64,000 nucleotides of DNA from Pseudomonas aeruginosa PAO1 (GTDB lineage: Bacteria; Pseudomonadota; Gammaproteobacteria; Pseudomonadales; Pseudomonadaceae). The position numbers and the translations under genes are program-made. The notes under the pieces were generated by a model. That model made no database searches. It saw only the letters and a program-made list of their open reading frames with translations, and was not told where the DNA came from. The stretch's first letter is position 1; every line of letters begins with the position of its first letter. Below are positions 26,716 to 56,745 of this stretch, piece after piece. The DNA is taken from assembly GCF_000006765.1 (NCBI RefSeq), contig NC_002516.2. One strand, written 5' to 3'.

Positions 26716-26754
26716 CTTGCTCCAGCCTGCCGGGTTTCTTGCCGCTGCCTGCCA
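26716..26754 (-). promoter_or_regulatory. Tandem AraC/FeaR-type boxes upstream of the aldehyde dehydrogenase
   Basis: Minus strand TGGCA-N8-CAAG and CGGCA-N8-CAAG, 22 bp apart; -10-like CAGAGT at 26689-26694. Confidence 0.6.
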
Positions 26755-26858
26755 AGCCAGGCAGAGAGAGACAAGACGGCGCGCCGGGGCATGGACATTC
26801 TGCCCGGCAGGCGGGACAGTGGACGTCCCGCCGCCTCGTCCCTCGGGAGTCCCGCGCC

Positions 26859-27527
26859 ATGCCTTCGACCCTGTCGCCCGACCTCGGCCCGCGCTGCATG
26901 CAGGCCTTCACCCAGGTGGTACCGGCCAGCCTGTGCGTGTTCTATCGCATCGACGAGGACTGCCGCGCACACGATTTCCAGCTCCTGCGGATGCCGGCCG
27001 GCATGCACCGCGACTACCTGCGCCACTACCGCGACTACGATCCGCTGCAGCCGCGCCACTGCCTGGCCAGCGCTTCGCCGGTGGTGCCGCTGCGCCAGGG
27101 CATCGCCCGCCAGCCCGCGGAGGACAGCGCACTGTACCAGGGCTTCCTGCGACGCCACGGGATCTGCGACGTGGTCGAGGTGCTGGCGCATGCGCATCAG
27201 CGTCCGGTCGCGGCCCTGTCGTTGCTGCGCGACGCCCGCCTAGGGGCCTTCTCCGACCAGGAGCTGCGACAGTTGCGCGCCCTGCATGGCCTGATGGAGC
27301 TGGCGGCGCAGGCATGCGCCACGCCAACGGCCAGCGCCGAGCGCCTGCAAGGCCTGACACCGAGGGAACGGGAGATCGCCCTGCTGCTGCGCGACGGCGT
27401 CAGCAACAAATGCCTGGCACAGTGCCTCGGACTCGGCCTGCCGACGGTGAAGACCCACCTGCTCAACCTGTTCCGCAAGACCGGCGCGCGCAGCCGCACC
27501 GAGCTGGTGAAGCGACTCTTCCTCTAG
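26859..27527 (+). CDS. LuxR-family regulator with N-terminal sensory domain (PA4074)
   Basis: LTPREREIALLLRDGVSNK...TVKTHLLNLFRK HTH. Confidence 0.9.
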   Translation: MPSTLSPDLGPRCMQAFTQVVPASLCVFYRIDEDCRAHDFQLLRMPAGMHRDYLRHYRDYDPLQPRHCLASASPVVPLRQGIARQPAEDSALYQGFLRRHGICDVVEVLAHAHQRPVAALSLLRDARLGAFSDQELRQLRALHGLMELAAQACATPTASAERLQGLTPREREIALLLRDGVSNKCLAQCLGLGLPTVKTHLLNLFRKTGARSRTELVKRLFL

Positions 27528-28327
27528 CCGCGCGCGGCCTGGGGGCTGCGCGCCTCCAGCCAGAAGAGGAACTGCCGCACCGCCAGCGGCTTGCCGCTCT
27601 CGTGCAGGCCGCGCAGGCGCTCGCGGTGGCGCCTGAAGGAAAAACCGGGAAATACCCAGGGCAGGTTCAACAGGTACCAGGCCAGGGCGCCGACATCGGC
27701 GAAGTGCAACACCTCCCAACCTTCGCCGCCTGCCACCGGCGGCAACTCCGCGGCCTCCAGCTGGGCCCGGGCGAAACCCAGGTTCCAGTGCGGCGCCTCC
27801 GGCGTCGGCGCCGGTTCGCCGAGCAACGCATAGAACTCGCGGTTGAAGTCGCCGGCCACCTGCTGGGTGAGGAAACAGCCGCCGGGCGCCAGCACCCGCC
27901 GGACCTCCGATGGCAGATAGGACTCGTGGCGGTTGCCGACCAGGTCGAAGGTGCCATCGGCGAACGGCAACGCCCCGCCGCCATCGCCCTCCCGGCCCTG
28001 GCGATGGTTGTCCGGCGCGCCCTCCACCTCGACCACGCGGATGCCCAAGGGCTCCAGACGACCCCGGGCAATCTCCAGGTTGGGCGCCCAGCCCTCGGTA
28101 GCCACGGTGAGCGGCGGGCGATACGGCAGCCGGCTCAACCATTCGCCGCCGCCGGTGCCCATGTCCAGCAGGCTGGCGGCGGCCCGGCAGCGCTCCAGCA
28201 TGCGCCCCGGGAAATCCCATGGCGGCGGTTCCAGGCGGATGCGTCCGCCATAGTCGTATTCCCAGCCGCGCATCGGTGTGCGGCCGGCTTCCGCCAGCAG
28301 CGCGTCGAATTCGTCGCCCGTCGCCAT
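27524..28327 (-). CDS. Class I SAM-dependent methyltransferase (PA4075)
   Basis: LLDMGTGGGE, LPFADGTFDLV and LAPGGCFLTQQV motifs. Confidence 0.88.
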   Translation of the reverse strand: MATGDEFDALLAEAGRTPMRGWEYDYGGRIRLEPPPWDFPGRMLERCRAAASLLDMGTGGGEWLSRLPYRPPLTVATEGWAPNLEIARGRLEPLGIRVVEVEGAPDNHRQGREGDGGGALPFADGTFDLVGNRHESYLPSEVRRVLAPGGCFLTQQVAGDFNREFYALLGEPAPTPEAPHWNLGFARAQLEAAELPPVAGGEGWEVLHFADVGALAWYLLNLPWVFPGFSFRRHRERLRGLHESGKPLAVRQFLFWLEARSPQAARG

Positions 28328-28395
28328 TTCGCCGTTCTCCCAGAGACCGCCCGCTACCATCCCCGAGTCTCCTCGCCAAGGCAAGCCCATAGAGA

Positions 28396-28453
28396 ATGTA
28401 AAGCTTGCTTGACAAAGAAGAGCATTCCGGCCAATGTAAAGCCCCCTTTACAT
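28396..28453 (+). promoter_or_regulatory. Two operator palindromes overlapping a sigma70 promoter
   Basis: ATGTAAAG-N4-CTTGACAA (28396-28415) and perfect ATGTAAAG-N4-CTTTACAT (28434-28453); TTGACA at 28409, CAATGT 17 bp later. Confidence 0.75.
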
Positions 28454-54568: not shown

Positions 54569-54582
54569 AGGAACGATCACCG

Positions 54583-55308
54583 ATGGTTTTCCAACACGAT
54601 ATCTACGCCGGCCAGCAGGTACTGGTCACTGGCGGCAGCTCCGGCATCGGCGCGGCCATCGCCATGCAGTTCGCCGAACTCGGCGCCGAAGTCGTCGCCC
54701 TCGGCCTGGACGCCGACGGCGTGCACGCACCGCGTCATCCGCGGATTCGCCGGGAAGAACTGGACATCACCGACAGCCAGCGCCTGCAACGGCTGTTCGA
54801 AGCGCTGCCGCGCCTGGATGTGCTGGTGAACAACGCCGGCATCAGCCGCGACCGCGAGGAATACGACCTGGCTACCTTCGAACGGGTGCTGCGCCTCAAC
54901 CTGAGCGCCGCCATGCTCGCCAGCCAACTGGCCCGGCCGCTGCTGGCGCAGCGCGGCGGCAGCATCCTCAACATCGCCTCGATGTACAGCACCTTCGGTT
55001 CCGCCGACCGCCCGGCCTACAGCGCCAGCAAGGGCGCCATCGTCCAGCTCACCCGTTCCCTGGCCTGCGAGTATGCCGCCGAGCGCATCCGGGTCAACGC
55101 CATCGCCCCCGGCTGGATCGACACGCCGCTGGGCGCCGGGCTCAAGGCCGACGTCGAGGCCACCCGCCGGATCATGCAGCGCACGCCGCTGGCGCGCTGG
55201 GGCGAGGCGCCCGAGGTGGCCAGCGCCGCGGCCTTCCTCTGCGGTCCCGGCGCCAGCTTCGTCACCGGCGCCGTGCTGGCGGTGGACGGCGGCTATCTCT
55301 GCGCCTGA
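54583..55308 (+). CDS. Short-chain dehydrogenase (PA4098)
   Basis: [26 protein letters not shown]. Confidence 0.93.
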
Positions 55309-55392
55309 GCCGCCTTCGCTCCGGATGCACCTGTCCGCTTGGGGCGGACAGCGATTCGCACGACAGAACAACAACAAGACGAGTGCCTTGCC

Positions 55393-56697
55393 ATGAAAAC
55401 CCTCCGCACCTTGCCGGCGCTGCTCTGCGCCGGTTTCCTCGGTCTCTCCGCGCAGGCCGCCGAAGACAGCCGCAGCGGCCCGCTGGCCGGGTTCGGCGAA
55501 CGACTCCAGCGCCACGGCGTGAAGACCCACGCGCAGTTCTGGAGCCTGTCGCTGAAGAACCTCGACACCGGCCCGCGCCAGCACAGCTTCGGCAACAGCG
55601 GCGACCTGTTCCTCGGCGCCGACCTCGACCTCGCCACCCTCGCCGGCCTGGACGGCGCCTCGCTGCACATCGAGGAAACCCTGTTCATCCTCGACCGCGG
55701 CACCGGTCAGCCCACCGGGCCGAGCTGGCAGGGCGCGGTGGGCAGCTACTTCGGCGGCGCGCCGCTGCACAACGACATCGGCGCCAACCAGCTGAGCCTG
55801 CTCACCTGGCAGCAGCAGTGGCTGGGCGGACGCCTCGACAGCCATCTCGGACGGACCAATGCGCGGCGCTATTTCCTGATCTACAACTGCGAGACCGTGG
55901 TCACCTGCAACGACCCGATCATCGACGCCTCCACCGGCATCCTGCCGCCGCCCTACGGCGCCTGGGGCGGCTACCTGAAGTACCGGGCGACCCCGACCCT
56001 GTACCTGCACGCCGGGGCCTTCGAGTCCAACCCGGTGGATTACCTGAAGAAGCGCCATGGCCTCGATTTCGGCACCGACGACGCCAGCGGCACCAGCCTG
56101 CTGCTGGGGATCGGCGACAAGCGCGAGGAAAGCCTCGATCCCTACCGCTCGCACTATGAACTCAACGCCTACCTGAACACCGCCAACCAGGTCGACCCGC
56201 TCACCGGCGCCAGCGACCACGGCAGCGCCGGCGGCTTCTTCAAGTTCCAGCAGCTGTTCTGGCGCGCCGACGGCGGCCGCCTCGATTCGCCGAGGGCGCT
56301 GGGGCTGTTCGGCTCGCTGTCGGTATCGGCCGACGACAAGCAGCCGTTCCGTCATTTCGCCGAGCTGGGCCTGACCTACCATGCGCCCTTCGACCGCACG
56401 CGGGACAAGCTCAACCTCAAGGCCAGCTACCTGCGCCTGAACGATCACCAGCTGGAGTTCCAGCGCCAGGCGCGGATCGCCGCTGGCGGCGATGCGAAAC
56501 TCGGCCAGCGCGACGTGTACGCCCTGGAAACCAATGCGCACATCGCACTGACCCCGCACATCGCGCTGGAGCCGTCGGTGCAGTACATCTTCAACCCGGA
56601 CAACTACTACAACCCCGGCGCTCGCGAACTGAGCGGAGACGGTTTCGTCGTCGGCCTGCAACTGATGGTCGACATGGGCTCGCTGCTGGGGCTTTAG
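55393..56697 (+). CDS. OprB-family carbohydrate-selective porin (PA4099)
   Basis: Signal peptide; GADLDLATLAG; LETNAHIALTPHIALEPSVQYIFNP beta-strand pattern. Confidence 0.82.
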   Translation: MKTLRTLPALLCAGFLGLSAQAAEDSRSGPLAGFGERLQRHGVKTHAQFWSLSLKNLDTGPRQHSFGNSGDLFLGADLDLATLAGLDGASLHIEETLFILDRGTGQPTGPSWQGAVGSYFGGAPLHNDIGANQLSLLTWQQQWLGGRLDSHLGRTNARRYFLIYNCETVVTCNDPIIDASTGILPPPYGAWGGYLKYRATPTLYLHAGAFESNPVDYLKKRHGLDFGTDDASGTSLLLGIGDKREESLDPYRSHYELNAYLNTANQVDPLTGASDHGSAGGFFKFQQLFWRADGGRLDSPRALGLFGSLSVSADDKQPFRHFAELGLTYHAPFDRTRDKLNLKASYLRLNDHQLEFQRQARIAAGGDAKLGQRDVYALETNAHIALTPHIALEPSVQYIFNPDNYYNPGARELSGDGFVVGLQLMVDMGSLLGL

Positions 56698-56706
56698 CGC
56701 GCCGCC

Positions 56707-56745
56707 TGGCAGCCTCGGTCAACCCCGCCGGCAGGCTGGGACAAG
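56707..56745 (+). promoter_or_regulatory. Tandem AraC/FeaR-type boxes upstream of the GMC oxidoreductase
   Basis: TGGCA-N8-CAAC (56707) and CGGCA-GGCTGGGA-CAAG (56729), 22 bp apart. Confidence 0.62.

Follow-up and report, generated by a model that had tools for sequence, protein, structure and literature searches.

A 64,000-nucleotide stretch of the Pseudomonas aeruginosa PAO1 chromosome (RefSeq GCF_000006765.1, contig NC_002516.2; at its full length "the window") carries genes for two AraC-family regulators, PA4070 and PA4094, and three tandem DNA boxes that are candidate binding sites for them. PA4070 is the last gene of an operon that begins with the aldehyde dehydrogenase gene PA4073 and continues with an amino-acid-type permease gene and a DUF3156 gene; site 1 lies upstream of PA4073. 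PA4094 is divergent from an operon that begins with the cupin gene PA4095, a homologue of 2,4'-dihydroxyacetophenone dioxygenase, and continues with genes for an MFS transporter, a Zn-dependent diol-type dehydrogenase, an SDR protein and an OprB-family porin, with the GMC-family oxidoreductase gene PA4100 beyond; site 2 lies ahead of PA4095 and site 3 in the spacer between the porin gene and PA4100. A first-pass annotation read the three sites as a single FeaR-type box that joins three distant promoters into one regulon. The reading that we consider well supported by what follows is a different one: two paralogous AraC-family activators probably act through two classes of box, with PA4100 fed by both circuits.

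Each site consists of two 17-bp boxes in tandem with a 22-bp period, is intergenic and is oriented to its downstream gene (Table 1). Positions, strands and period are as the first-pass annotation had them, and its degenerate pattern matches these three sites and no others in the window, with no match in 100 shuffles. Because that pattern had been fitted post hoc, independent tests were run. A looser regular expression (regex) finds 12.6 matches per 100 kb in seven loci with FeaR orthologues and 4.1 per 100 kb in loci with PA4094 orthologues; the density in 915 kb of unrelated loci is 0.33 per 100 kb. Weight matrices were trained on orthologous promoters alone, with none from P. aeruginosa or P. 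paraeruginosa. The FeaR-class matrix (two copies of YGGCAG-N7-CAAG) assigns 43.4 bits to site 1, 33.4 bits to site 3 and 10.0 bits to site 2; the PA4094-class matrix (two copies of YGTCC-N8-CAA..) assigns 39.0 bits to site 2, 7.2 bits to site 3 and 5.2 bits to site 1. In random 64-kb sequences the maximum averages 2.9 bits (peak 10.1) with the FeaR matrix and 8.5 bits (peak 16.5) with the PA4094 matrix. The top score with either matrix in 6.3 Mb of random sequence (window composition, both strands) is 21 bits, none reaching 25, and the 915 kb of unrelated real loci contain no FeaR-class match of at least 15 bits.

The two classes are distinguished by single bases. At position 5, 27 of 28 FeaR-class half-sites have A and none of the 22 PA4094-class half-sites does; at position 3, all 28 of the former have G and all 11 distal boxes of the PA4094 class have T. 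FeaR-class half-sites have additional preferences for G6, C8, A9, C14 and G17, and this longer consensus is why the proximal boxes of sites 1 and 3 are so alike (15 of 17 bases identical, a likeness on which the first-pass annotation had already remarked). Recognition helix 1 reads SVRxLYRLF in the FeaR family and S(S/P/T)RHL(A/N)RLF in the PA4094 family, and recognition helix 2 reads GF(S/T)DSAHF and GFSSQAHF, respectively, differences that would fit the distinct base preferences of the two families. The proposal of one box at all three promoters fails at site 2, which is of a separate class, is scored no higher than noise by the FeaR matrix and, across phyla, goes together with PA4094 orthologues. 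The degenerate pattern that the three sites have in common is the grammar of an AraC subfamily and not the signature of a single regulator. A FeaR-class half-site scan of the window returns seven matches of at least 12 bits. The half-site TGGTACCCAGGATCAAG, within the aldehyde dehydrogenase coding region (25290-25306, minus strand; 16.1 bits), has no partner 21-22 bp away and is probably due to chance.

Table 1. Genes, boxes and candidate promoter elements of the window (positions are those of the window; -10 and promoter assignments are candidates)
Feature	Position	Strand	Basis or remark
Presumed FeaR-activated operon	21821..26630	-	Pfam, NCBIfam; same gene set in L071-L077
feaR (PA4070)	21821-22771	-	NCBIfam FeaR equivalog
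DUF3156 gene	22932-23510	-	Pfam
Amino-acid-type permease	23485-24975	-	Pfam
Aldehyde dehydrogenase (PA4073)	25143-26630	-	49% identical to E. coli FeaB
Candidate -10 CAGAGT, aldehyde dehydrogenase promoter	26689..26694	-	21 nt after CAAG of site 1
Site 1, FeaR-class tandem box	26716..26754	-	distal TGGCAGGCAGCGGCAAG (26754-26738), 5-nt gap, proximal CGGCAGGCTGGAGCAAG (26732-26716)
Orphan FeaR-class half-site AGGCAGAGAGAGACAAG	26759..26775	+	13.3 bits; back to back with site 1, facing PA4074
PA4074, GerE/LuxR-type regulator	26859..27527	+	Pfam GerE; 63% identical to L071 GerE gene; abuts spacer
MoaF, class-III transaminase, SDR (PA4087-PA4089)	44096..47072	+	displaced rest of AT1-GerE-MoaF-AT2-SDR unit
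PA4088, induced in mixed biofilms	~44938-46314		PMC9993114
PA4094, AraC-family regulator	50372..51331	-	Pfam AraC_binding_2 + HTH_18; PAO1 4576372-4577331
Candidate sigma-70 promoter of PA4094	51455..51483	-	-35 TTGACG (51483-51478), 17 nt, -10 GTTAAT (51460-51455)
Site 2, PA4094-class tandem box	51552..51590	+	distal TGTCCGAAAAGCGCAAG, 5-nt gap, proximal TGGCCGCCAGGGTCAAA
Candidate -10 TAGAGT, dioxygenase operon promoter	51611..51616	+	20 nt after CAAA of site 2
PA4094-controlled operon (presumed)	51650..56697	+	Pfam; synteny in L002-L016
PA4095, cupin, 2,4'-dihydroxyacetophenone-dioxygenase homologue	51650-52183	+	PDB 4p9g
PA4097 and PA4098, induced in mixed biofilms	53531-55308		PMC9993114
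OprB-family porin	55339-56697	+	Pfam
Site 3, FeaR-class tandem box in porin-GMC spacer	56707..56745	+	distal TGGCAGCCTCGGTCAAC, 5-nt gap, proximal CGGCAGGCTGGGACAAG
Candidate -10 region TCCAATGG, PA4100	56766..56773	+	20 nt after site 3 proximal box
PA4100, GMC-family FAD oxidoreductase	56852..58531	+	Pfam GMC_oxred_N + GMC_oxred_C

PA4070 scores 424.7 bits on the NCBIfam model NF007243 (FeaR equivalog, cut-off 199), covering positions 2-301 of the 303 in the profile. Its alignment with E. coli FeaR spans the whole protein (28% identity, E = 2e-35), the two have the first recognition helix SVRxLYR(L/M)F in common, and the cluster to which it belongs, a large Pseudomonas family, is labeled 'transcriptional regulator FeaR' by NCBI. 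Among FeaR proteins only the enterobacterial one has a documented aldehyde response: it is reported to be activated by the aromatic aldehydes that TynA generates, and A81, M83, L100 and L108 have been named as positions of its pocket (PMC11542736); the corresponding residues of PA4070 in the alignment are A, L, M and I. Of the two FeaR-like regulators that the first-pass annotation proposed, PA4070 is upheld, as a FeaR orthologue beside a FeaB-like aldehyde dehydrogenase, and PA4094 is not. The latter reaches 123.1 bits on the same model, below the cut-off, and BLASTP aligns only its helix-turn-helix (HTH) region with PA4070 and E. coli FeaR (36-38% identity); judged from its sequence, PA4094 is FeaR-like and has the same domain architecture, yet is no FeaR.

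Site 1 aligns without gaps with the promoters of orthologous aldehyde dehydrogenase and permease genes. All seven orthologous feaR loci (L071-L077) contain FeaR-class boxes, of the form TGGCAG-N7-CAA(G/A), a 4- or 5-nt gap, and YGGCAG-N7-CAAG. The genes behind them encode the aldehyde dehydrogenase, a divergent class-III transaminase and the permease-DUF3156-feaR set, as well as a DAO-Cupin_3 operon, a porin-like protein and a PAS-MCP protein. The period of Pseudomonas FeaR-class sites is 22 bp in 10 of 14 and 21 bp in the remaining four. Metagenome contigs were also scanned with the pattern, a procedure that is heavily burdened with noise from coding tandem repeats below ~30 bits, and 19 of the loci returned were checked for neighboring genes. 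A recognizable feaR cluster is present in 10 of the 19 (nine with a box of at least 34 bits; L144 with 30.2 bits), bringing the number of feaR clusters with a FeaR-class box to 17 in all; three more loci (L090, L135 and L105) have boxes of 35-45 bits and no match to the reference proteins. FeaR boxes are also found ahead of the PAS-MCP gene in L077 (3096-3133, plus strand), L166 and L183, and their presence there hints at FeaR-controlled taxis. A gene beside feaR in P. entomophila (L076, 9140-10411, minus strand) encodes a 423-residue protein with a hit to Pfam Anthrax_toxA (adenylate-cyclase-type), which has no bearing on the boxes.

Site 2 has a history of its own. A scan of a genome collection yields 12 Pseudomonas orthologues of PA4094 (66-94% identity) and, at 41-45% identity, relatives from Pseudonocardia, Pseudorhodoplanes and an actinobacterial genome bin. 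All of these loci have a tandem box of 22-bp period; it stands before the cupin gene save in the reduced clusters L006, L007 and L009, where it stands before the first operon gene. The box aligns without gaps in 13 orthologous loci, the three distant ones included, and its N8 stretches vary freely: the invariant columns of the alignment (A1) are precisely the GTC, AA, G-C and A of the boxes. The regulator gene is downstream, not divergent, in the two actinobacterial loci, and the box still stands before the cupin gene, which ties it to the regulon rather than to a shared spacer.

PA4095 is ~80% identical over 173 residues to 2,4'-dihydroxyacetophenone dioxygenase, and PDB matches for products of its operon include that enzyme (4p9g, 332 bits) and 6ie0 (287 bits). 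PA4095 and 4p9g are identical in the stretch HYHPHE...GEGH with its three iron-binding histidines; the ligands given for the enzyme are histidines 76, 78 and 114 (PMC4219425). Among solved structures the closest to the Zn-dehydrogenase is an (R,R)-butanediol dehydrogenase, an enzyme that acts on vicinal diols. With these two neighbors the cluster looks like a route for the cleavage of aryl diols or alpha-hydroxy-ketones, and the general alcohol oxidation that the first-pass annotation envisaged for the cupin operon does not accord with its first gene. PA4094-type clusters usually adjoin hpaB and hpaC, and HpaB and HpaC equivalogs are present in the window at 47738-49844.

Several loci bring the two gene sets together. 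In L007 (Pseudomonas sp. SH1-B; 3500-9802, minus strand), MFS transporter, porin and GMC genes are followed by a gene for an aldehyde dehydrogenase 57% identical to PA4073, which by its place is a predicted member of the PA4094 regulon. In P. costantinii (L003; 590-2395, minus strand), a DAO-Cupin_3 pair driven by a FeaR box comes directly after the GMC gene. Links such as these point to related aromatic substrates for the two circuits, which may be aryl vicinal diols or alpha-hydroxy-ketones for the one and aromatic aldehydes from amines or alcohols for the other. A FeaR-class box also precedes an MCP-like gene that adjoins the PA4094-type cluster of L006 (9218-9256, plus strand). Candida albicans secretes aromatic alcohols. 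In a published transcriptome of mixed biofilms with C. albicans, PA4097, PA4098 and PA4088 rank among the most induced genes, though the induction is mild at ~2-fold (PMC9993114), a hint that the two gene sets are co-induced.

The -10-like hexamers that were noticed at the aldehyde dehydrogenase and cupin promoters are present and conserved. CA[GCA]AGT is found 20-21 nt downstream of the box in L071-L077 and in the metagenome loci; the site 2 counterpart in orthologues is TA[GAC]AGT, with T69, A72 and T74 of alignment A1 nearly invariant. Sites 1 and 2 and their orthologues consequently have the layout of class II AraC-type promoters, with 20-21 nt from the end of the box to a conserved -10 and no usable -35, the -10 of site 3 being weaker. 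C(C/T/A)AATGG lies 21-22 nt downstream of the box in the FeaR-class promoters L003_DAO and L073_AT, and site 3 has CCAATGG. A scan with the sigma-70 consensus calls no promoter and no canonical -35/-10 pair at sites 1-3, a negative result that is uninformative because it is expected of activator-dependent promoters. PA4094 itself has a candidate sigma-70 promoter (Table 1), which a stricter consensus scan does not call; the block CATTAACAT(A/C)TGAA...GTCAA in this promoter region is kept in all 12 spacers of the Pseudomonas orthologues.

Site 3 is the element at which the two circuits appear to meet. It lies 10 bp past the stop codon of the porin gene and 107 bp ahead of the start codon of PA4100, in the same gene cluster as site 2 and only 5 kb from it. 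The three distant promoters of the first-pass annotation are therefore better described as two local regulator-operon pairs with one cross-link. The common box class of the aldehyde dehydrogenase and GMC promoters makes it plausible that one regulator connects loci 30 kb apart, and to this extent coordination over that distance survives; site 2, being of a distinct class, drops out of it. The nearest solved relatives of PA4100 are a chloramphenicol-inactivating oxidoreductase, choline dehydrogenase and alcohol oxidases. No terminator was found on the plus strand between the porin gene and site 3, so PA4100 is probably transcribed from both promoters and is probably the sole node common to both circuits.

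A 154-bp spacer with a FeaR-class box at this place is found in P. aeruginosa and P. paraeruginosa (L002, 37.1 bits); the two species are 98% identical in this spacer and 83% identical in that of site 2. P. costantinii, P. chlororaphis, P. piscis and four more species have a porin-GMC or transporter-GMC spacer without a box (80-150 bp long in L006 and L007, ~35 bp in the other five), and in all seven the GMC gene is the last or next-to-last of the PA4094 operon; in L009 it is the first gene behind the PA4094-class box. Site 3 is accordingly predicted to be an internal FeaR-type promoter added in one lineage. Its distal box is identical in 16 of 17 positions to the FeaR box before the amine-oxidase-type (DAO) gene of L076. 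BLAST of the 154-bp spacer against all loci matches the boxes alone, so that no donor promoter can be named, and none of the 19 metagenome loci checked for neighbors has a GMC gene near its box. The predicted leader of PA4100 (56778-56830, plus strand) can form two GC-rich hairpins (-37.8 kcal/mol, z = -2.07, modestly better than shuffles); the second is terminator-like on the minus strand (56829-56811), and an Rfam scan of the leader returns no match.

The surroundings of site 1 have been rearranged as well. In other pseudomonads the aldehyde dehydrogenase promoter stands back to back with a second FeaR box (L071-L073, L091, L153), which in L071-L073 and L091 heads a transaminase-GerE-MoaF-transaminase-SDR unit (AT1-GerE-MoaF-AT2-SDR), contiguous in L091. 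The first transaminase is absent from the window. The GerE-type gene PA4074 still abuts the spacer, in which the orphan half-site AGGCAGAGAGAGACAAG is probably a relic of the divergent transaminase promoter, and the rest of the unit lies displaced by ~17 kb that include the cupB fimbrial genes. Neither matrix nor half-site scan finds a box in the AT-rich segment upstream of MoaF (43795-44095). The position of the MoaF-transaminase-SDR genes behind cupB indicates that an insertion containing cupB split an older FeaR unit; the interruption by cupB that had been proposed is real, and what it breaks up is a FeaR cluster. To judge from these comparisons, P. aeruginosa has lost one FeaR promoter and gained another.

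In the model that we propose, each activator would bind as a dimer to two direct 17-bp repeats, of which the proximal one abuts the -35 position in the class II manner, and the proximal subunit, if it behaves like other AraC-family members and E. coli FeaR, would contact RNA polymerase at -35. FeaR (PA4070) would recognize YGGCAG-N7-CAAG repeated at 22 bp and, by analogy with E. coli and Klebsiella FeaR, would be switched on by aromatic aldehydes. It would drive the aldehyde dehydrogenase-permease-DUF3156-feaR operon through site 1 and, through site 3, the lineage-specific internal promoter ahead of PA4100. PA4094 would recognize YGTCC-N8-CAA / YGKCY-N8-MAAA at site 2 and drive the divergent operon that begins with the dioxygenase homologue and ancestrally ended in the same GMC gene.

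A number of observations weigh against so clean a separation. The training sites of the matrices were found by a regex derived from the degenerate pattern of the first-pass annotation, so that the fixed positions are partly circular, and the regex left the discriminating positions 5, 6, 8, 9, 14 and 17 free. An HT-SELEX atlas lists, in its accessible part, expression plasmids for PA4070 and PA4094 and a motif for neither. Taken as a FeaR half-site, the proximal half of site 2, TGGCCGCCAGGGTCAAA, reaches 16.6 bits, which makes some cross-binding possible, and the PA4094 matrix gives 7.6-7.9 bits to the proximal halves of sites 1 and 3. Zeng and Spiro are said to have defined the E. coli FeaR site, in 2013, as two direct TGNCA-N8-AAA repeats, with the aldehyde product as coactivator, and E. 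coli FeaR does accept G or T at position 3. Taken with the single degenerate pattern that accommodates all three sites, and with the 36% identity of PA4070 and PA4094 in the HTH region, these half-site scores and this tolerance would suit one shared regulon, in which the two proteins recognize the three boxes interchangeably and co-regulate the three promoters. We nevertheless regard that arrangement as unlikely: the class-specific bases keep company with the cognate regulator in 17 independent loci of the one class and 13 of the other, the cross-scores of full sites stay at the level of random sequence, and the recognition helices differ consistently (V versus S/P/T, Y versus A/N, D versus S).

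Site 3 is known in two closely related species only, and the sequence behind it offers no persuasive -10 hexamer with A2 and T6. It might be a non-functional relic or a chance look-alike, with PA4100 expressed by read-through from the site 2 promoter alone. The GMC gene does without a promoter of its own in nine other species (boxless after a porin or transporter gene in seven and first in L009), and the lack of a canonical sigma-70 promoter, of a plus-strand terminator between porin and GMC genes and of a GMC gene near any box of the checked metagenome loci is in keeping with this. Yet both half-sites are intact, at 33-37 bits for the full site in a test in which random sequence never reaches 25; the box points the right way and stands at a proper distance from the start codon; CCAATGG, downstream of it, recurs in other FeaR-class promoters; and the spacer is better conserved between the two species than the neighboring intergenic region. 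A dead site 3 is on this evidence quite improbable, more so than the shared regulon. Least credible of all, and barely worth entertaining, is the notion that another regulator binds the boxes, be it the GerE-type PA4074, whose orthologues co-occur with feaR clusters, or an AraC-family protein that binds tandem sites of a similar kind, for example ArgR, whose sites in P. aeruginosa are tandem TGTCGC-N8-AA and close to the PA4094-class box. The same type of box is found at E. coli tynA and feaB, where there is no GerE partner; FeaR boxes are present whether or not a GerE gene is nearby (L104, L121); and boxes of the PA4094 class accompany PA4094 orthologues as far as Actinobacteria and Alphaproteobacteria.

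If PA4070 and PA4094 do work through separate boxes, two uncharacterized regulators gain concrete candidate operators and sets of targets, and the matrices are directly usable for annotating the FeaR regulon in pseudomonads. The PA4095-PA4100 cluster would be assigned to a route for aromatic alpha-hydroxy-ketone cleavage rather than to generic alcohol oxidation. Two look-alike motifs are parted by single bases, A versus C at position 5 and G versus T at position 3, which offers a system for the study of how paralogous AraC-family proteins avoid cross-talk. The unexpected feature is the lineage-specific cross-link through PA4100, the gain of one promoter connecting two circuits. The type of FeaR box in E. 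coli and the naming of PA4070 as FeaR by NCBI are already known; a search of the literature found no description of a Pseudomonas FeaR operator or its regulon, of a PA4094 operator, or of an internal promoter of PA4100. A more speculative extension, which is possible though we should not wager on it, is that the FeaR circuit has been rewired in the P. aeruginosa lineage: with the transaminase promoter lost and a FeaR promoter at PA4100 gained, PA4100 would be an aldehyde-generating arm of positive feedback that couples aromatic breakdown to FeaR. PA4100 would then take the role of TynA in E. coli, and the breakdown of aryl glycols, alpha-hydroxy-ketones or beta-hydroxylated aromatic amines (octopamine or catecholamine-type host metabolites) would be coupled to an aldehyde-sensing FeaR and its dehydrogenase.

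Among systems already described, the enzyme closest to PA4095 is the 2,4'-dihydroxyacetophenone dioxygenase of Alcaligenes sp. 4HAP (4p9g; PMC4219425), which is alike throughout and identical in the iron-histidine stretch; its description does not include what surrounds PA4095, namely regulator, transporter, dehydrogenases, porin, GMC enzyme and FeaR-like control.

The closest regulatory parallel is E. coli FeaR, which like PA4070 is an AraC-family activator with an AraC_binding_2 domain. The feaB promoter has TGTCA-N8-AAA-N5-TGTCA-N8-AAA and the tynA promoter TGGCA-N8-AAA-N5-TGGCA-N8-CAA, both with a 21-bp period and with 21 nt from the proximal A-tract to the -10 (TACACT or TAATGT). As at sites 1 and 3, there are two direct repeats spaced by roughly two turns of the helix, in E. 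coli of the TG(G/T)CA-N8-xAA type, and, as at sites 1 and 2, 20-21 nt separate the end of the proximal repeat from the -10. The targets correspond in part: E. coli FeaR controls a FeaB-type aromatic aldehyde dehydrogenase together with an aldehyde-making enzyme, and the gene behind site 1 is a feaB homologue in the feaR operon, while the boxes of its orthologues also precede transaminase and DAO genes; an aldehyde-producing role for the GMC enzyme behind site 3 would complete the parallel. The differences are equally plain. The Pseudomonas period is mostly 22 bp and not 21, and the consensus is longer and stricter, YGGCAG(C/G)CA...CAAG. Distal Pseudomonas boxes read TGGCA-N8-CAA and proximal ones start with C (CGGCA), only the AA at positions 15-16 being common with E. 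coli, so that the two sets, as read from their sequences, have the same geometry and a shifted consensus. The E. coli sites escape the Pseudomonas FeaR matrix, the preferences within N8 being different, and the parallel is therefore drawn from the sequences as read. The Pseudomonas circuit lacks a copper amine oxidase; its place is taken in other pseudomonads by transaminases or flavoenzymes of the DAO type and apparently, in P. aeruginosa, by the GMC oxidoreductase. Finally, the PA4070 feaR gene is the last of its own target operon and not divergent from it.

The tyramine and dopamine (tyn) clusters of P. putida U and P. aeruginosa PAO, reportedly the subject of work by Arcos et al. in 2010 and by Cuskey and Olsen in 1987-88, are said to be like the window in content, with an aldehyde dehydrogenase, a permease, a regulator and an amine-deaminating enzyme, and to adjoin hpa (homoprotocatechuate) genes; no published description of an operator or FeaR-box regulon was found for them. 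The operator geometry has further parallels within the genus. ArgR, GbdR and CdhR of Pseudomonas are AraC-family activators with tandem TGTC..-N8-AA sites, which resemble the boxes described here in being direct repeats with a 21-22-bp period, in a pentamer that starts with TG and in an AA ~10 bp downstream. They differ in the proteins themselves, in their effector domains and in the discriminating bases, and it is with orthologues of PA4094 that the PA4094-class box co-occurs.

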